Notes: a model not told the origin generated them from the letters alone. A DNA stretch of 64,000 nt from Asterias rubens (GCF_902459465.1 NC_047070.1:12276001-12340000), one strand, 5' to 3'. Counted from the stretch's first letter, positions 1,990 to 34,488 are shown. Made by a program: numbers and translations.

Positions 1990-3194
1990 GGCTCACCTCA
2001 AGCTCTGTCCAGGCGGTGCCTGGACAGGTCACTTGCTTGGGGCTCTCTTCTGGGTTGAGATGCTGACAGCACTGCTCTCCCAAAAGCACCTTCGCTCTGG
2101 AGCACATCACGCAGATAGCAGTGGTGAATGAAGGTTGATGGACCCTTCCAGTAAGCTGCTTGTAAGATCTTTGCAAAGGAAATCCCCCTGAAAAACGCCC
2201 AGGATGTGGACACGGCACGGACGTCGTGTGCACGTATGGGTCCCTGACTGCCTGTATCCTTATCCGACAGCCAGTCGGGGTTTGCTGACTTTATTGCTGA
2301 TACAATCCACCGTTTGATTGTATCTTTGGAGGCTGGACCATGCTGGGGAGTAGTCGAGATAAAAAGTTGGTCGCAGGTCCCTCTAAGTGGCTTGGTACGT
2401 TCCAGATACCATTTGAGGGAGCGTATGGGGCACCAGAGCCTGTCTGATCAGACAGATGATATAGAGGCAATTTCAGGAATGAAGATATCAGGCCGGGTAA
2501 AAACTGCCGTCTGGTTCTTAGTAAGGAATGAAGCCTTGGGTACAAGGCGAACCCCTCCCGGTTCTCACCGGATGTGGCCCGGTTGGATCGTAAGTGCCTG
2601 GATTTCACATCCCCTCCAAGCTGAAGCTGCAGCTATGAGGAAGGCCAGCTCGACCGAAAGTTGCAACAGTGATGACCGGTGTGCCGGCTCATAGGGGACC
2701 GCTGCTAAGTTCTCTAGCACCCGCCCCAAGTCCCAGGATGGGACCAGCCTCTGTCTCGGGGGCCTTTCGTTAAACATGGCCCTAAGTATCTGTGTTAGCA
2801 CGGGGCTCGATGAGATTGTGGAGCCATCGGAGAACCCTACATGGACTGCCACAATGGCCGATCTGTAATTCTTAATTGTTGTCACCTTCAGTTGGGAATT
2901 AAAGAGGTGAACCAGAAAATCCGACACCATCGCTAAAGATGCAGTGGTCGGATCCACAGCGTGGTCGTCACACCACCGACTAAAATGTTGAAGTCGTTTG
3001 TCGTAAACCTTTTGTGTGGAGAGGCGACGCCCCTTCGCTGCAAGGGTCGCAGCCTCTTCAGAAAGACCAGCTGTAATGAGGGATCGTTTGACAGTGGCCA
3101 ACACGCTAGGTGGAGGTCTCCCGGCGCCGGATGTAGTAGTCGGGAGTGTGGTTGGTATAGGAGATCGTGTCGATCCGGGAGAAACAGGCCACAA
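1990..3194 (-). pseudogene. DIRS tyrosine recombinase (frameshifted)
   Basis: TQKVYDKRLQHFSRWC...TIKNYRSAI...SWDLGRVL...AFLIAAASAWRGCEIQAL, with C-terminal ILQAAYWKGPSTFIHHCYLRDV in another frame. Confidence 0.9.
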
Positions 3195-23684: not shown

Positions 23685-24700
23685 CTAGAACCGTCCTCCC
23701 CGCTCTGCCCTCTGTCCGGAGTACATCCTCAAATAACAGTCTGTGAATGTATTTGGGGTCTTCCAGCAGGCTGCCTGTGTAATATCACTCAAAGAAACAT
23801 CTTTAAAAAATGCCCATGATGTGGAGGCTGCCCGAATTTTGTGGACGTTAACCCTCTCCGACGTTGGCAGGTTCGCGTCTGAGCGTATCGCTGCGACGAG
23901 CCATCGAGTAATCGTGTCCCGGGACGCCGGGCCATGCGGCGGCGTCAACGTAATGAACAACTGTGGGTGGTTACGCAGCGGTTCCGTTCGGCTGACATAC
24001 CACTTAAGTGCCCTGACTGGGAACCATAGCTTGTCTTTCCGGACCGACGAGTGGGACTTAATGTCTGGCGGCAAAAACGTATCAGACTGGTACTTGGTCA
24101 GAAAACCCGTCGCGGGTATCAGACGAACCCAACTTGGTTCCCACCGGATGTGGCCTGGCTCGGTCGACAGGGAGTGAAGCTCACTGCGACGCCTCGACGT
24201 AGCCACGGCTAACAAGAAAGTCAATTTAATGGATAGTTGCAACAGCGTTGCGCTAGCCATTGGTTCATAAGGCGGTCCCATGCAGGTCCCATGCAGGTAC
24301 CAGCCTCCGTACCGGAGGCCGGGACACAAACATCCCCTTAAGCAGCTGGCCAAGAGCCCGACTGTTGGAGACGGAGGACCCATCCGGAAACCCATTGTGA
24401 ACGGCCGAAATTGCTGACCGGTAGTTCTTAATCTTGAGATTGGCCTCAAAAAGGTAGACCAAGAAATCTGCTACCTCCCCTACATTAGTATTGGGGGGGA
24501 TGTAGAGACCTCTGCCTGCACCGTCGGTAAAAATGTCGTAGCCTGCTGTCATACACCTTTCTGGTGGATGCCCGCCGGCTACATGCTGCAATTTCCGCAG
24601 CTCGTCGTGAAAGGCCTGCTGCGCAGAGTGACTGCGTGACAGCACCCAGCACGTCAGGTGGAGATGTTGGGGGGCTGGGTGCAGTAGGCCCGAGCTGGGT
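23685..24700 (-). pseudogene. DIRS tyrosine recombinase
   Basis: STRKVYDSRLRHF...KIKNYRSAIS...LLAVATSRRRSELHSL...HKIRAASTSWAF...AACWKTPNTFTDCYL; frameshifted. Confidence 0.9.
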
Positions 24701-26520
24701 TGGAACAAGATGTCTGCCCTCTGGGGAAGAACCACCAGGCGGTGCACCAGTAGCCTGGTAAGGCGGGTGAACCACGGTTGGCGGGGCCAAAAAGGGGCTA
24801 TAAGGAGGATTTTGCACTCCTGCTGCTCCAGTTTGGTGAGAGGAGTTTTAGAGAAGCGAGATCGGGGGGAAAGCATACGCTAGAAGCCCGTCCAACTGGA
24901 CAGCCAGAGCGTCCCTCCGAGCAGTACGTCGGGAGTTGGTGGTTGTTGCTTGAAGCGAACAGATCGACGTGTGGGCGGTCGATCAGTTGGAACATTAGTT
25001 GAGCAACCTGAGGACGCAGCGTCCACTCTGTGGGGTGGATCCACCCCCTGGACAGAGCATCCGCTGTGACGTTCTCCTCGCCCGGGAGATGAATCGCCGT
25101 AAGGGAGACCTCGTTGTGCATGCACCAGTGGAGCAACTCCCAGGTGTGTGCGCACAACTGGGGGGACCGAGTCCCCCCCTGGCGGTTGATGTATGACACG
25201 ACGGTGGTGTTGTCGGATTGAACCAACACCACCTGGCCAACCACCACCCTCCGGAAACATTCGAGATCGTAGGTCACTGCTAGCAGCTCGAGTACATTGT
25301 GTGGGCCGAGCTGTGCTCGAGGCCCCAACACCCGGCCACCTGGCGTTGGCCCAGGGTAGCCCCCCAGCCCGACAGAGCTGCGTCCGTTGTGACAGTCAAT
25401 GACGGTCGGGGCTTGCAGAAAGCTCGACCCCCCCAAGAGGTTTGCGTCATCGAGCCACCACCGGAGGTGTGGGTCCAGCCACGCCGAAGTCGGCACCAAA
25501 TGACTGATGGTGTTGCGACTGGGTCGGTAAAAGGAAAGCAGGTGGAATTGTATCGGTCTCATACGAAGCCTGCAAAACTTTATGACGTCCACCATGCTGG
25601 CCATGAGCCCCAACAGTCGGAGCCAGGCCCGAGCCGGGGCCCCCGACGTTGCCAAAAAGAGGGAAGCGCATTGTTTGAGGTTCCTCGAAGGGAGGGCCAT
25701 GCAGCCCGGCCCATAGGTCGAGTGACGCCCCAAGAAAAGTTGGGCACTGGGACGGGGTCAGCTGGGATTTCTCGGTGTTTATGAGAAACCCCAGATCGGC
25801 TACCAGCCGCCACGTTAGCGCGAGAGCTGCTTGTGTGGAGGCCCAGGATTGACCCACGATCAACCAGTTGTCGAGGTAGGTGAACACCGACACCCCCAGC
25901 CTCCGCAAGGCGGCCCCTACCACCTTCACTTATCAGGTGAAGACCCGAGGGGAGGTGGAGAGGCCGAACGGGAGCACTGAGAATTCGTATCGGACATTTA
26001 TGGTATTGAAACCAAAGGAATTTCCAGTGCTCTCGGCAGACGGGAACGTGAAGGTAAGCGTCCTTCAAATCCAGGCTTGCCGCCCACGCCGACGTCCGGA
26101 TGGACTCTAATGTAATTTTGAGAGTGTCCATCCGAAAACGCCTGGGGCGAATAAACCTGTTCACAGGCTTGAGGTTTAGGATGGGACGCCAAGTGCCGGC
26201 CTCCTTCTTGGGGACCAAGAAGAAGGTCGACATAAACCCCGACCTTATTTCGCCCGATGGAAGAACATGAACCGCCCTTTTCTTGATGAGGGATGTAATC
26301 TCCTCTTCGAGAGAAAGGCGTTGTTTTGGGTCGGTCGGGATCAGCGTCGGCCGAACCAACATTTCCGACGGAGGGGTGCCAGTGAACTCGATCGCATAGC
26401 CGCGATCGACTGTACTGAGCACCCATCGGTCGGAGGTTACCTGAGCCCAGGACCCCGCAAAGTCGCGGAGGCGGCCCTCCAATGGTCCGACGATGGGAGG
26501 TCGCCGCGAGTCTGACACGT
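24700..26520 (-). pseudogene. DIRS pol: RT, RNase H, DAM-like methyltransferase
   Basis: STFFLVPKK..WRPILNLK..FRMDTL, LDLKDAYLHVP, YLDNWL (YxDD mutated), HNVLELLAV..SDNTTVVSYINRQGGTRS, HVDLFASSNN; several frameshifts. Confidence 0.92.
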
Positions 26521-28261
26521 CACTTCCGCCAGCCCCCGGGGTAGCGGGGGGCCGGTGCTCGGAAGCCATGACGGGCAGCTGGGCGTTGTTGACCAGCAAA
26601 CGGCTGGGGTTGCGTGGTACGCGTCCCCGCCGAGCTGGCTGCCCGGTTCCGAAAAACACCGCGTGCGGGCTTGAACGGTTTACGCTGAGGGATAACAAAT
26701 GAAGGCTTACCTCGACCCTGAGGTGGCTTGGCGGAGGGGCCCGCCGGCTTCTTGAGGTTAATTTTCTCAGTAGCTTTAAGCCGCTTGGCCTCCGCCTGCA
26801 TTAGATCCTCGAATTTCCCTGCAAATAAATCTCCGCCCGCCAAGGGGAGGGCCTCAAACCTCTTGCGAGCGCCCGGAGACGGGAGAAAAAGGGCGTCGAG
26901 TGCGTTGCACCGACGAGCCCGCGTCGCCAATGTCGTCACTTGTGCGAACTGGTCTAGCGCTGTCTTCAGCCCATGGTCAAGGCACTGAAAAGCCGCCCGC
27001 AACATGTCCGCGGGAACATCACTGTCCTCTTCGCACACCATAGCCAAGTATTCGGTTAAGAGCAGCAAAAATGATGTTGACCGCATACCAAATCTAGAAG
27101 CGACATCAACTTTCTTCAGGGTCTCCTCAAACCTATCTCTCACTTTGTCTGGGAAAGCCCTTTTGGATGCTGTAGCCCCGGCATCGGGGCCTAATTTATC
27201 TTTCACAGAGTCATGTAGCACTGGCATGGCAAAGAACTCCTCGAAGTCCACCTGAGGAAACTGGTAGTATTCACTCTCATGAGATGAATACAACTCTGTC
27301 TCCGTTATGGATAACCGTTGCAGCTGTGCCACCTCATCCTCCCCAGCCGAATCGCCGGAGCGAGATGCATGGGTGGACACCGGGGATCGGGAGCCGTGTG
27401 AACTCGTTGGAGTGGCGTCCCGGCCCTGCACATGAGGCCCCCCCTTGGTCGAAAAAGACGACGATGGGTGGATGCTCAACGCCGGCTAACCGTGTGTGGC
27501 AAATCCTGCTGTACTGCCCCCAACCAACCATGGCCAATGACCTTTGGTTGGGGGGGGGGGGGGTTAAGTAATTTCAATCGGTGGCCCAAACCCGACGGGC
27601 ATCTGCCGGGAGGCAGGGAGGCCAGTCAGGGATGCCGTAAAGGACTGAAATGCTTGGAAGAGATCAGCCCTTGTCATCAAATCTTCCCCCTTACGGCGTA
27701 TGCCGTGGGCAGATTGATCCGAACTCGAGCTTCTCGAGGAAGAGCAGCGCGCACGCCGCGACTTCTTATTCTTTCCACCCCTGTGTGACGTATTGCCTTG
27801 AGTAACCGAAGACACGTCAGATGGCTGAGGAACGGGCACCCCAGAACACCGGAAACCCGATGCCGTGGAGCGCCCGTCCAAGCGTGACACGCTCAGGGGC
27901 AACAGTCCGTCTAGCCCTCCCCCGGCCCGCTGTGCCCCAACACCCATCGGGTTAGCGGGCGCTGCGTGGTCCGGAAACCCGGTTAACTACCCGCCCCGGT
28001 CACCCGTGCTGTATTGCACTGTGCCAGGGGGGCCCCGAGAGGCCAGAACCCATTGAGCCACGACGGGTAGCCACAATGGGCTGTCCGGTGCTCTTGGTTT
28101 GGTCGGTGGCAAGCATCAGATCCGGTACAACGTCTTGCTTACCAACTCGACCCTTCTTAGGCTTAAGTTCCGTCTTTGGGGCTCGGGTAACCCGCCCCTT
28201 GGACACAGCCTTGCGTTTGCCAGCCCCACTATCTTTGGCCGATGCTGGGGACCGAGTACTC
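26520..28261 (-). pseudogene. DIRS gag, 3' part
   Basis: 319-aa ORF ending RRCNALDALFLP..FEALPLAGGDLFAGK, directly upstream of pol. Confidence 0.8.
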
Positions 28262-28374
28262 CACGGTGTTACAATGGGGAAATCTAATTTGGCGCCCTCT
28301 CGTGGTTATATATTGCCAGTCGGACGAAAACGCACGATAGCGCATGCGTGGTAGTTAGGAACGCTACAACAATC

Positions 28375-31300
28375 ATGGCGTCTCGTTCATGCTTTGTTTG
28401 TATGACGAAAAAGAGCTCAAGATTTCACAAAATAGCGACGAATTTAGAGGATATTTTAAATGAAATATGATCGCGAAGATACTGAAGATAGACGGTTGTG
28501 TGCAACGTGCGTGGGCAACGTGGTCACATACAGAAAATGTGGGAAAACCTTCCACCACCGTGTAGCGTCGAAGGGTAAAGTTGGCTTTGTAGGGCACCGG
28601 AAAATCGGGGGGAAACGGCAGAGTAGCGCTAGCGTTAGCGGCGGGGAAGCTGATGATCGTGGGGACCCGATGGACGCTGGGGACGTGGGGGGTGGTGGTG
28701 ACGGCGATCACGATGTCAGACCAGCACCACCAGCAGAAGAAGAACCAGCAGCAGAAGTAAGCCGACCTCCGTCCATATCGGAAGTAAAACTTCAGCGTCT
28801 TTTGACCGTTTCTGACGATATGCCTCTCAACAAAGACCAGGAGCACCTCTTTACCAAAATTCTCAACAAGAAGCAGCAAGCATCCCAAAGTGGCCTCGTT
28901 ACTGCCGTCAATCCCCGAGGTCGTCCGAAGAGATTGCTGCCAATCCCAAGTGCAGAGACGGGGAGTACAACATGTACGCTAAGAACGAAGAGACAAAGAA
29001 GTCAGCTTCTTGAATTTGTTGAGAAGCTGACTAGCTCTCCAAGTGATTCGTTACCATCTACCCCATCTTCGTCGAGAACTCCTTCCCCACTCACCACGAC
29101 AAGCGATGTCAGCAGTCAGCGTTTGTTTCATCTGAAACGCAACAAAGCCCAGTACATGGACATGATGAAATCTGCCGGCTTCAAGGTATTTGGGAAGTTT
29201 TCGAGAGGTGCTGTACAACACATAAAATCTGTTGTACCATTCAACATGTTTCGCCTGTTGAAGAGGGTGTTTCGTTCTGAGGGTTTCGATGTTCTGGGCT
29301 CCGAGGCACAACTTCGTCACGAGCTTCGGGACATCGAATTTGAGTATGAATGTGGGTCGTTCTTCAATAAACATTATAAAGCCACCTGCAACTTCATCAG
29401 GGTGACGGATGTTGCAGATGTTGTCCCACGAATGGGGACCGAAACCAGAGAGGCAGGGGAACTTCACCAACCGTCAAATATCGCCCAAGGTAGGCTAACG
29501 TTATAAGTATTATTACTAGGCCTAGTACTTTAGTAGTCATTATTTACAAAAAATTCATTGATTGAGCAAGTGCATGGATTAAATTTGAAATTTTGGGTCG
29601 CACTAAATACCGACAACTCACGACAACAATTTTGAAATGCACTTTAACTTTGGCTTTTTATTAAAAAAATTATGTTTTACAAGGCAGCTAATTTTGTTTT
29701 GCAACTGTTACAACTTACATGAATCGTGTTTTTAAAAAATTCATAATTCAAATGTATTCAGTGGTTCGTAACAACTAGGCCTGTAGTGGATTTATTTGCA
29801 GAGATGAAGATGGCTAGTCAGCTATTAAATAAGGAAAAACTCAAATAAAACCTATGCCACATATGGCGTTAATTGAATTTTCTTTAAATTGTTCATTACC
29901 GGACCTCAACCCATGAAATATTATTTACTTTTCCCAGGTACATTGGCCTTGCATGTAACCGGTGATAAGGGAGGGTCTTCCACCAAGTTGTTGTTGCAGA
30001 TCCTAAACAGCACCAAGCAGCACTCGGTAACATCTTCAAAGCTCCTTGCCTTTTTTGAGGGATGCCCAGATGACAGGTATGTTCGTTTAAAGGAGCACAC
30101 CAGTTTACCGTTTACCTAAATAGTAATTTAGATGGCCTTTGTGCCTTGTGTATGTGATGGGCGTCTGCCATAAAAAAAAGACAATTAGCTCCATTCTATA
30201 AACTAATTGTTGTCAAAATGTTCTTGAAAATTCATAGAAAAGTTTATTGTTGCACAATTCGCTGTATTCCAACAATGCGCTAAGTTTATTGAAAGCATGA
30301 GGGAGCGTACGGTTCGACCCAAATTTTTTTTTAAAATCTTGTCATGACTGTTCAAGTGTATGTAACATACTCTAATTTTGTTTTTCCCCTGTAGGTTCAG
30401 TATAGAGACTTCATTCCAGCCAGTGTTTGACGCTCTGAAAGAAGTTGCAGACCACATCGAGGACTTCTCGCTGATAGCGCCAGACCCATTGTCTCCACCG
30501 AAGTGTCATGATGATAATCCGCCGAAGAAGCCAGGTATGCTTCATTCTATACTTTGCTGTCAAAGATTTATCAGCATTATTTTGTTAAAGGCAGTGGACA
30601 CTATTGGTAATTACTCAAAATAATAATTAGCATAAAACCTTACTTTGTGATGAGTAATTAGGAGAGGTTGATGGTACATTGTGAGAAACGGCTCCGTCTG
30701 AAGTGACATAGCTTTGGAGAAAGAAGTAATTTTCCATGAATTTGATTTTGAGGCCTCAGATTTAGAATTTGAGGTCTCAAAATCAACCATCTCACTAAAC
30801 GCACACAACTTCGTGTGACAAGGGTGTTTTTTCTTTCATCATTTAATATCTCGCAACCTCAACGACCAATTGGGTGAGCTCAAATTTTCACAGGTTTGTT
30901 ATTCTATGCCTAAGCTAGATACACCAAGTGAGAAGTCTGGTCTTTTGACAATTACATGTACCAATAGTGTCCAGTGTCTTTAAAACAAGTTCAAGTTTTC
31001 AACCCTTTCAGTTTCTTATTCAGTTTTCAATTAAATAAATCATCTTTTGTGATTTTTCACATTTGTCTGTGCAGAAATTTCATGGAACCCTCTGCAACCC
31101 TTCGATGACAGCAACACTACCGTCAGCAAAGAGTGCAGCGACTGCTTGGCTCACCACCATGGCTCATCACTGATGCAGACTAGTGGTGATGGGTCACCAC
31201 ATGCACTAGATGCAAAACCAGATGGGGACATGTCTGCTTGCAATGAAGGTAAAAGTGTTTTTCGTTTGTGCCAGTTGACCTATGGTGGGGATTGGGAGTG

Positions 31301-32609
31301 GCTGGCAAAGCTGTTAGGATTAACAGGCCCAAATGGAAAACATTATTGCCTCCATTGCAAAACGACTCTCCAGGACCTTGAAAAGGGAACTCCTCACGCC
31401 CTTCATATACTTCCTAAGTACAGACAGCCTGAAGGGAATGACGGTATTCAAGCCCCCTTCAGAACACTAAACGAGTGTTGCCAACAAAGCAAGGCTTTCA
31501 TTGACGCTGGAAGAATAACCAAGGACGCATCACAATATTTAAATTGTATATTAACCCAATAATTTGCGGGGAGGGTAATATTTTGGATTGTGTGAGCACA
31601 ACACCACTACACATTAGCTTAGGTTTGGGAAAACAAATAATAGATATATTGGAAAAACAGGTAGGTGAACTGGATGCAGAGGTCAGGGATTCTGGGGTTG
31701 TCTTTTGTGACGAAGTGAGAGATCTTTATTCAAGGAAAGAGGCTCTGTTAGAGGACAAAACTAGGTTGGAAGAGTAAAAACGAGTTCTAGGGGAAGAGAA
31801 GCAGGAGAGAGTGCAGACAATAGAAGCAGTCATACAGGGCAACCTAGATCACTTTGAGCGAGTTAATGGTAGGTTAGTTTGCAACACTGCTGTGGCAAGG
31901 GACTCACGAAAACAAGTTGCTGAACTTAAGAGGGATGTAAAGGAAGTAGAAGTAAGAATCAAAAGTACCGAGAAGGAAGTTGCCGCTGTTGATAAACTGC
32001 AACTTGAAATACAAGAAGCAACATGTAAGGTCAAGGGACCATTTAAAGAGCGGTTTGATGCAGTCATCGATGAATTGAGGTTAAAAAGAGCTGCATACCA
32101 CAGCGGGGCATTTGTGGGATCAGACATCAACAAGGTCTTTAAGCTTAAGAACATCCCAAAATTTGGTCACATTTTCAAACCACTAACTATTCTTGGGGTA
32201 TCTTTCAGCTCATGTACGTTGAGGGTTAAAATTACATGTCTGCTTAATAAATTTAGATTATGTTATAACTTGTATACAGCAAATCGCCCCCTATGTAAAG
32301 CACGAGGTAGAGTTACTGGTACTTCGCTGTTGTAGCTTCGGAAGTTGGTTTCCCGTGAACTTTCCAAACGAAAGTCTCAAACGAAAGTTCCATCTTCTAA
32401 CTGTTGAAGTACCACGTCAAGCTAGACGACTGTGTTCAGTAGGCTTGTACACAGAGCAAGCATCAGAGAGCATTCACCCACATGTGAATAGGCTCGAGAG
32501 AATGTACTCATCGGTTCAGAATATTCCTCAGAGGCAGGCATTAATTGCCAAGCAGCATAACCTTTATTCTGTGGCACGTTCATATGAAAGTGGCCAGCCT
32601 CACCAGTAA
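28375..32609 (+). pseudogene. Four-exon RAG1-core-like DDE transposase with N-terminal C2C2 zinc finger
   Basis: Exons ~28375-29489, ~29938-30078, ~30395-30534 and ~31075-32609 splice in frame (GT-AG). Motifs: CFVC...CATC, VTGDKGGSSTK (D1), YGGDWEWL (D2), CLHC, TPLHISLG, YHSGAFVG, KFHLL, EQASESIH (E). Three frameshifts and one stop. Confidence 0.85.
30589..30979. mobile_element. TTAA-flanked MITE (Kolobok-like AG termini) in transposase intron 3
   Basis: TIR AGGCAGTGGACACTATTGG versus inverted CCAATAGTGTCCAGTGTCT. TTAA on both sides. Same family at 55274-55651, with partial copies near 8860-9025 and 52070-52420. Confidence 0.8.
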
Positions 32610-34327
32610 ATCGAAATTCCTTTAATCTAATGTAATACGTGAAGTATTTCTTTCAAATTTTCAGTAACCAGCCATGATAATTCAAAATGTGGAGAGACGG
32701 TAATGTTCTAATAATGTTTGACGTCAATGAATAAAATGCTGTTTAATCGATTGAATAAAATGTTTAATCGATAAGGAGCTTGTTTTCGTAATTTAAATGA
32801 AATCCTGAATTAATGTCATTACCTGTAACTTGTAAACAAAACTGGAATACATATACATGTATTCGTCTAGCTTGACGTGGTAACTCTTCTCGATTTCGTA
32901 CAAATCATCATGTGATTTATTTTTGTTTGGAACTGAATGTATGTACATAGTTTTTATTTCATTTTCCAATATATTTGTTGATGTTGAATGTTTTTACCAC
33001 AACCGTTTGCCTAATTATTTGCTATTACAGTGGATAATGATGAAGCTAAAAACATGTTATGTTGAAGGAAAATAATTGTGTGGCAAAATCATTGCAGGTT
33101 GGCCTAATAAAACATTGGTCATACATTTCAGAATTTGTCATGTTTGTTATAATTTATAAAAACTGCTAACATTCTCAGTAGTTATTTAAATTTGTAATAT
33201 TGTTGTGAGAAACCGAACAAAATTAAATAATAATCGGTATGAATGTAAATAAAGCAGCTATTCAACATAATGCCATCAAAGACTCCTTTTCCATGTCATG
33301 TTTTCTTAGTCAAAGCAAATTGCAGTTGGGAAATTGGTGAGCCTAGCAGAGCTAGCATGCATGCAGCGCGCGAGCGACGTCCCATGCGAAATGTTGTCAT
33401 GAGGATGCAACCAAAATGGCGACTTTGTTCACATGAAAACGTCTTCCATTGACGCTCAAAAACGTACCATAAGCATGTTTTCCCTTTTACTATTAAATAA
33501 AAGCACTTCGAATATAGGAACTACGGATACTCATCTCTATTATTCTAAAACAACTTTAATGTTAGTTGACCGAGTTATTGATCAAATTCGGGAATTTGGG
33601 TGGGTAATGTTGAGCAAATTCTCCGGCAGCGTAATCTACTTACATTTTCTGAAAAAATACGTCGAGAGACGAAGTACAAAATACCACATTTTGACCAATC
33701 GCCGATGAAAGGGAATGCCTGTCTCTTTCAAGTTAACCTTAATAGTATAATAATGCCACCCATGAGTTCAGTTTTCAAATATACGTTTGTTAAAACGTGA
33801 TTTATGGTGCTTTTTTTACATGAGAAAATCCACCAGGCGAACTATTTCTCTAGGTTTGACCAACTCGACCTGCATACGATTAGATAGGAAAACTACGTAG
33901 CAACCGATTACTTAAGCCATGTAGACCGATCTATTATTTTTAAAGGGGTGTTTGGGGAGCAATAACTGAAGAGAAAGTACTGTTAGTTGATTTGGTTTTC
34001 TAGACAAAGCAACAATTGTACGACATTTGATTGATGACGTCACTGCAATATAGTAAAATATAATCAGAGGTATTCTGGCTCTTTTTTGTTTTGTTTTAAA
34101 GCATTACGGTGAGATGGTACAGCTAGTACCCCCTTTAATATAATAGAACAGTCCAACAGGCCTGGCTCTATAGGGTGTACGTGGTGAGGGTGGTTTTGTT
34201 AGCGAACAATGATCTCATGAATATTCATATGACGCTCAAAGCCAAAACGACCTTCGATCTCAAAGCGCCCTCTATTGTTTTTAAATAGACAAAAGATTTC
34301 CGGTATTAAGCGACCTGAACAGCCGTG

Positions 34328-34488
34328 ACTCGGGCCCCCCCGACATCACCAGTGGACTGGGACTGGGACGGCAACGTAGTGTCGCCGACACAGCCTACCG
34401 AGGACTCTGACTGTCCCGAGGGGATGTAACTTCCCTCAGTTACGACAGACTTTGTCCTCCCAAAACGCTTCATTTTCTTCTCACACAA
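34328..34488 (-). pseudogene. DIRS gag N-terminus, split off by the Chapaev-like insertion
   Basis: MKRFGRTKSVVTEGSYIPSGQSESSVGCVGDT is homologous to 5580-5676. Confidence 0.75.

Follow-up and report, generated by a model that had tools for sequence, protein, structure and literature searches.

Unequal terminal signals have been described for Transib and RAG-like (RAGL) transposons. Kapitonov and Jurka reported in 2005 that several Transib families, among them Transib5, Transib2_AG, and TransibN1-3_AG, carry a 5′ end resembling the recombination signal sequence with a 12-bp spacer (RSS12) and a 3′ end resembling that with a 23-bp spacer (RSS23) (PMC1131882). A 10-bp asymmetry was later found in the ends of RAGL-A elements by Martin et al. 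(2023), who argue for asymmetric ends as early as the first RAG-like transposon (PMC10462144). Chapaev elements, for which PMC4411706 cites a description by Kapitonov and Jurka in Repbase Reports (2007), encode transposases that have been equated with the domain DUF1280 and grouped with RAG1 (PMC3985635). Here we examine a transposon of Chapaev type from Asterias rubens, found within a 64,000-nt stretch of DNA (GCF_902459465.1 NC_047070.1:12276001-12340000) that we refer to as the window and within which coordinates are counted.

How the 12/23 rule arose is an open question about the history of V(D)J recombination, and the two ends of this element differ in a manner that bears upon it. Taking the evidence together, we think it probable that the element is a defective member of a young Chapaev-type family with a RAG1-fold transposase and no RAG2 partner, that its unequal bipartite ends have been selected throughout its clade, and that its two unlike ends would pair with one another.

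Results

The two ends of the Asterias element carry a shared motif at unequal distances

The termini of the element and the flanking duplication are laid out as follows.

28258–28261, no strand: left copy of the target-site duplication, ACTC, identical to 34328–34331
28262–34327, + strand (transposase gene on +): whole transposon, 6,066 bp, family A, bounded by the ACTC duplication and CAC ends
28262–28268, + strand: left heptamer, CACGGTG, read from the sequence
28279–28288, + strand: left subterminal 10-mer, GAAATCTAAT, at positions 18–27 from the end; the octamer of a preliminary description of this DNA lies at 28278–28285
28292–28300, + strand: left copy of a second shared 9-mer, GCGCCCTCT, an exact repeat (D4)
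34265–34273, + strand: right copy of GCGCCCTCT (D4), direct rather than inverted relative to the left copy
34291–34300, − strand: right subterminal 10-mer, GAAATCTTTT, at positions 28–37 from the end; the octamer of the preliminary description lies at 34294–34301
34321–34327, − strand: right heptamer, CACGGCT when read inward, read from the sequence
34328–34331, no strand: right copy of the target-site duplication, ACTC, read from the sequence

The left end reads CACGGTG-TTACAATGG-GGAAATCT (28262–28285), and the right end, read inward, CACGGCT-GTTCAGGTCGCTTAATACC-GGAAATCT (34327 down to 34294). The octamer GGAAATCT thus follows the CAC heptamer after 9 bp on the left and 19 bp on the right. 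Within the window, the pattern CACGG followed by 7–22 nt and GGAAATCT has two matches, located at the two termini in inverted orientation, where shuffled sequences lead one to expect 0.04; elsewhere in the window, GGAAATCT occurs six more times, in unrelated contexts. The asymmetric heptamer–octamer ends flanked by ACTC, as proposed in the preliminary description, are therefore borne out by the window sequence and the shuffle expectation. The right boundary is also confirmed by a metagenome contig (L001) carrying a ~99% identical copy, which diverges from the window one base after the terminal CCGTG. Two stretches of ~40–60 nt would share one 8-mer by chance with a probability of roughly 0.03; the single octamer match is thus only suggestive, and the weight must come from relatives.

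Six further families share the short-left, long-right layout

We defined ends for six further families. Families D and F come from Ptychodera flava, whereas B, C, E, and G come from marine metagenomes, for which an alignment of relatives (A4) served as a query. Transposases are ~30–45% identical among the families. The elements are listed below with the basis on which their ends were located, their duplication, the start of the 10-mer counted from the left and right ends, and the corresponding spacers.

Family A: window, 28262–34327; duplication ACTC; 10-mer starts 18/28; spacers 10/20 bp
Family B: L003, 398–5812; ends from three contigs with different flanks; one copy fits a duplication of 4 or 5 bp; starts 18/30; spacers 10/22 bp
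Family C: L013, 1480–10963; ends from four contigs; duplication CCGT, across two contigs of one locus; starts 19/30; spacers 11/22 bp
Family D: Ptychodera, L006, 3032–18123; terminal-word search; duplication TGCA; starts 18/30; spacers 10/22 bp
Family E: L008, 8671–13642; inverted repeat and terminal word; no matching duplication; starts 18/29; spacers 10/21 bp
Family F: Ptychodera, L027, 9900–16380; motif scan; duplication TGCT; starts 18/30; spacers 10/22 bp
Family G: L029, 7831–13269; right end by scan, left end by duplication and CAC; duplication ATGT; starts 18/30; spacers 10/22 bp

Both termini begin with CAC in all seven families, the heptamer taking the form CAC[GA][GA]G[CT], and the second block is in each case a 10-mer near G[AC]AATCTAAT. 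On the left this 10-mer is GAAATCTAAT in families A, B, and F, GCAATCTAAT in D, GCAACTTAAT in C, GCCATTTAAT in E, and CCAATCTAAA in G. The right spacer exceeds the left by 10–12 bp in every family (the figure is 9 bp for the majority of the other family A copies), and the end with the short spacer lies upstream of the transposase gene in seven of seven. Duplications of 4 bp flank the elements of families A, C, D, F, and G; target-site duplications of CMC elements span 2–4 bp. The spacers have no sequence in common between families. Within one element, the bases directly behind the heptamer (often GTTT) agree between the two ends, which diverge beyond the first 4–13 bp in every family.

For families B, C, E, and G, as well as the right end of D, ends were located without constraint on the offset of the motif, and those of B and C were taken from multi-copy contigs without consulting the motif. 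In an ungapped comparison of left and right ends, the motif pair gives the best 9-mer match in families A, D, and E, with a difference in position of 10, 12, and 11, respectively, and a perfect match in the latter two; in C it shares first place with another pair, and in B a different pair scores higher. We also built a weight matrix for each family from columns 18–27 of the left ends of the other six only. This leave-one-out matrix ranked the left 10-mer as the top match in all seven left ends, and its top right-end match starts at 28–30 in five of seven families, family A included. Shuffled right ends give a start at 28–30 in 3.6% of cases, which places the probability of at least five in seven at about 1e-6; this range was picked post hoc, and a correction of ~30-fold still leaves P small.

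As the one-turn offset is kept in all seven families though the spacers have wholly diverged, the comparison of sequences indicates that it is a selected feature of the clade and not an accident of the window copy. The check proposed in the preliminary description, whether motif and offset hold while spacers vary, thus has a positive outcome, with differences of 10–12 bp in the six other families. Its exact terms, the octamer at a 9/19 spacing, proved specific to the window copy: most family A copies have 10/19, and the right-end motif is degenerate in families B and C.

A generic search for CAC ends with a duplication returned none at the single-copy loci L006–L008, and the ends at L006 and L008 were later obtained through family-specific terminal words. 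No relatives were found in viral contigs.

The transposase belongs with DUF1280 proteins and has a homologue with the RAG1 core fold

The transposase gene occupies several exons on the + strand of the element.

28375–28467, + strand: start of the transposase, with a Cys-rich N-terminus (C-x2-C ... H); the frame is severed from the next open reading frame (ORF) in the window copy
28778–29485, + strand: exon with the conserved N-terminal module (G-R-P-K) and the part equivalent to where the RAG1 core begins; aligned by tblastn with P0005, P0062, and P0087; alignment A7
29934–30077, + strand: exon with the first putative catalytic Asp motif, HVTGDKGG; DUF1280 match; 50–54% identity to relatives; Asp predicted at 29964–29966
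31077–31547, + strand: exon with the second putative catalytic Asp (GGDWEW) and a C-x2-C zinc motif; Asp predicted at 31290–31292
31556–32299, + strand: exon containing PLHISLGLG as well as a long coiled-coil insertion; a frameshift ahead (~31551) and a stop at 31775–31777 in the window copy
32289–32576, + strand: last conserved exon, with the putative catalytic Glu motif ASESIHP; 50% identity to P0087 and P0062; Glu predicted at 32466–32468

The catalytic role of the two Asp residues and the Glu is suggested by these motifs; GGDW and the C-x2-C pair are invariant in alignment A4. Segment 29889–30119 of the window matches Pfam DUF1280 above the curated cut-off (E 4.9e-08). The homologues P0005, P0062, and P0087 match the same domain with E values down to 2e-22, and all longer relatives carry it. 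An exhaustive profile search with exon 31053–31559 recovered 69 relatives, proteins of Ptychodera flava and Amphiura filiformis among them, and a word-indexed protein search with the first ORF returned self-like fragments only. FAM60A-type zinc-finger matches are found at the N-terminus of relatives, where the window has its Cys-rich stretch, a candidate for the N-terminal Chapa zinc-finger domain of Chapaev transposases.

For structural analysis we used an AlphaFold model (pLDDT 76.6) of the homologue P0087 (820 aa) in place of the window protein itself; the window exons align to P0087 residues 61–788 at 30–54% identity. The top 49 Foldseek matches of this model are all RAG1, the lancelet RAG1-like protein BbRAGL, or HzTransib (E 1e-15), and these three are its sole strong structural matches. 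With VIA-align, P0087 residues 184–798 superimpose on RAG1 459–1008 with a Z score of 25, with corresponding scores of 22.8 for BbRAGL and 21.6 for HzTransib. The match extends over the RAG1-type core: the dimerisation and DNA-binding domain, RNase H, the zinc-binding regions, and the C-terminal domain. Judged from this homologue, the transposase is an intron-split DDE enzyme with the RAG1/Transib core fold, in agreement with the fold assigned in the preliminary description.

No RAG2-like (kelch) gene was found in family A, which lacks a second long ORF, or in family B, which has a single 820-aa ORF; the absence of a RAG2 partner stated earlier holds to that extent. Family C likewise yielded no RAG2-like gene, its ORFs matching only DUF1280 and F-box. 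The F-box ORF (L013:1585–2436, E 6e-09) of this 9.5-kb element lies between the left end and the transposase exons.

CAC ends, a 4-bp duplication, and DUF1280 with the RAG1 fold together identify the element as a Chapaev-type, RAG1-fold transposon, and the Chapaev-like label it had been given is retained on the basis of the DUF1280 match, CAC termini, and duplication length. We rejected assignment as a canonical Transib because the duplication is 4 bp rather than 5 bp, and as a RAGL transposon because there is no RAG2L gene.

Discussion

Explanations for the unequal ends

In the mechanism that we favour, the catalytic core would bind and cut at the heptamer while an N-terminal DNA-binding module would read the 10-mer. 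Unequal spacing would then render the two ends non-equivalent in the synaptic (paired) complex, such that left–right pairs would be favoured over like pairs, much as the RAG1 nonamer-binding domain acts with 12/23 signals. By this analogy, an unlike-end pairing rule is plausible. A G-[RK]-P motif, which reads GRPK in the window (28910–28925), is conserved across the seven families within a beta-hairpin/helix module (alignment A7), ~75 residues ahead of the RAG1-like core, and the GRPR of the RAG1 nonamer-binding domain lies at a similar distance. We regard the module as a weak lead toward a counterpart of that domain.

The unequal ends might instead mark orientation, or assemble different numbers of subunits at each end, with no helical-phase rule of the 12/23 type; in that case, the extra 10–12 bp downstream might accommodate an additional binding site, or one for a host factor. 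Unequal ends are indeed common among DNA transposons, the P element, piggyBac, Mu, and Tn7 being examples, and the divergence of the two ends beyond 4–13 bp in every family is compatible with such a role, as is the second 9-mer of family A, which occurs in direct orientation at unequal distances from the ends. Long spacers without cross-family likeness nevertheless make a conserved extra site unlikely, and a mere difference between ends does not predict that the offset should cluster tightly at 10–12 bp, approximately one helical turn. We consider this account rather unlikely, if one to be taken seriously. A neutral history, in which an ancestral longer inverted repeat underwent one indel of ~11 bp that seven families inherited without selection on spacing, appears improbable to us. 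It would explain why the polarity is everywhere the same, as a single ancestral event should leave the short spacer upstream in each descendant, but drift over such a distance should have spread the lengths, which hold at 10–11 and 20–22 bp despite ~30–45% identity and full turnover of the spacers, and the 10-mer, too, has been kept at each end.

It is very improbable that GGAAATCT matches at the two ends by chance or that the left motif is an element of a promoter or 5′ untranslated region. What speaks for it is the ~0.03 expectation for the shared 8-mer taken by itself, together with promoter-like GC palindromes ~80 bp inside the left end; it is contradicted by the cross-family matrix test, by an identical 10-mer at the same left offset in three families with close variants in four more, and by related 10-mers lying inverted at 28–30 in right ends.

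Several observations count against our preferred account of selected ends that pair with their unlike partner. The fold assignment derives from the model of a homologue and not from the window's own protein, and the pairing rule is an argument from analogy. The N-terminal module, which we compare with the RAG1 nonamer-binding domain, shows no sequence match to that domain or to solved structures, and its model is poor (pLDDT 66) and without a fold match. The left spacer has an additional G, making it 10 bp, in L001, in a second metagenome contig (L002), and in three of four sequencing runs, the remaining run agreeing with the window (9 bp); this variation within family A implies a spacing tolerance of at least ±1 bp. 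As to the families, the search that first placed the left ends in D and F used a pattern containing the motif, which makes these ends not wholly independent of it, although exact duplications verify them, and family E is without a matching duplication. Degenerate versions of the right-end motif occur in B (GCATTCTATT) and C (TCAACTTGAA), and the cross-family matrix missed the right motifs of C and E, which were found via their own left-end motif only. Finally, no credible ends were found at the Amphiura locus L007 or contig L028, a result that is uninformative rather than contrary.

Relation to known systems

P element and piggyBac ends resemble those described here in having an internal transposase site at unequal distances from the termini and in requiring one end of each kind. 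Their transposase folds are unrelated, and their spacer differences are not tied to a RAG1-type enzyme. The signals of V(D)J recombination are closer, sharing a CAC heptamer with a second element, two spacer classes about one turn apart, and the same core fold. They differ in the sequence of the second element and in spacer length, which is here 10–11 or 20–22 bp to the 10-mer in a register that is arbitrary by 1–2 bp; the present ends, moreover, belong to mobile elements.

With Chapaev (CMC-Chapaev), the elements share a DUF1280 DDE transposase, CAC termini, a 4-bp duplication, animal hosts, and a distant kinship to Transib and RAG1. Chapaev3 differs in its 3-bp TWA duplication (PMC3014272). 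The asymmetric Transib families have the same arrangement of a CAC heptamer, a second block, and a spacer that is shorter 5′ and longer 3′, likewise with a RAG1-fold enzyme and no RAG2. Transib elements, in contrast, make 5-bp duplications and use an A-rich nonamer as the second block, and two RSS23-like ends are the rule among Transib families, in contrast to the asymmetry of all seven families described here; the present transposases are also too distant to be detected by the Pfam RAG1 models. PflRAGL-A of Ptychodera flava offers a further parallel, with a heptamer, a short stretch shared end to end (here often GTTT, compare TR2), a spacer asymmetry of ~10 bp, and an AT-containing block (PMC10462144). 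It has RAG2L, 5-bp duplications, and a recognisable nonamer-binding domain with GRPR/K; the elements here have no RAG2L, a 4-bp duplication, and the G-[RK]-P motif alone in a low-confidence module.

The novelty is accordingly narrower than the preliminary description supposed, asymmetry in Transib (PMC1131882) and RAGL-A (PMC10462144) having already been published. Our literature search, which did not reach Repbase, turned up no earlier account of Chapaev ends with a conserved layout of short and long spacers. The ends compared here extend the known asymmetry to the distant Chapaev branch, with its 4-bp duplications, different second block, and lack of RAG2, where it is apparently universal. 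The same polarity and one-turn difference, previously seen in a minority of Transib families and in RAGL-A, recur in every family that we examined of this distant branch, which suggests that unequal ends are an old and general solution among RAG1-fold transposases; the alternative is repeated convergence. It is possible, though we lean toward doubting it, that the layout of short 5′ and long 3′ spacers, read by an N-terminal module with a G-R-P motif, dates back to the ancestor that Chapaev, Transib, and RAG-like transposons share. If so, the physical basis of the 12/23 rule would be older than both the capture of RAG2 and the split between Chapaev and Transib, and would not have had several origins. 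Since these are single-protein elements with apparently intact relatives, the rule could be studied in them without RAG2.

State of the window copy, insertion site, and further features

The window copy was compared with L001 and L002, both ~99% identical copies of the family A element, and with contigs of four sequencing runs. Relative to the other copies, it is missing 11 bases near 28453–28458 and one base at ~31551 (a frameshift), has one surplus base at ~32297 (a second frameshift), and reads T in place of C at 31775, which creates an in-frame stop. These four lesions, set against ~99% identical copies, mark the window element as a broken member of a young, recently active family.

One intron of the element also harbours a nested repeat of very high copy number.

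30585–30990, no strand: nested repeat, ~400 bp, with 30-bp inverted ends at 30580–30609 and 30959–30988 (I3)

In the four runs, the contig word depth of this repeat is in the millions, versus ~300 for the rest of the element. Loose ends in the comparison with the runs stem mostly from it, and the left boundary was not confirmed by them. Depth is also raised ~100-fold at 29500–29699, and the window copy has 32 surplus bases at 29689–29720 that are absent from L001 and L002; 29500–29720 is probably another repeat fragment.

The element sits in a GC-rich retroelement (23685–27947, − strand) with weak matches to reverse transcriptase (RT) and RNase H-like domains. Once the element and one ACTC are taken out, a minus-strand frame runs without a stop for 100 codons across the rejoined site, upstream of the minus-strand RT/RNase H ORFs. 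The earlier claim that the boundary is supported by rejoining of a DIRS gag can thus be checked only weakly: an open frame does cross the site, and no gag or DIRS assignment was obtained for the host sequence. L001 (6086–6900) keeps the left flank of the window next to another right flank (AACT...); the contig is either chimeric or records a second site of insertion.

The GCGCCCTCT copies lie 6 bp and 20 bp inside the octamers, and TTTGGCGC also occurs in the left end of family B. The family D copy (L006:3032–18123), at 15 kb by far the longest, is located within an LDL-receptor-type gene and probably holds nested insertions. Families A, C, and D have GC-rich palindromes, GCGCATGCG and GCGTGCGC, ~70–85 bp in from their left ends (window 28338–28352; L013 ~1560–1575; L006 ~3100–3115), which may serve the transposase gene as promoter elements.

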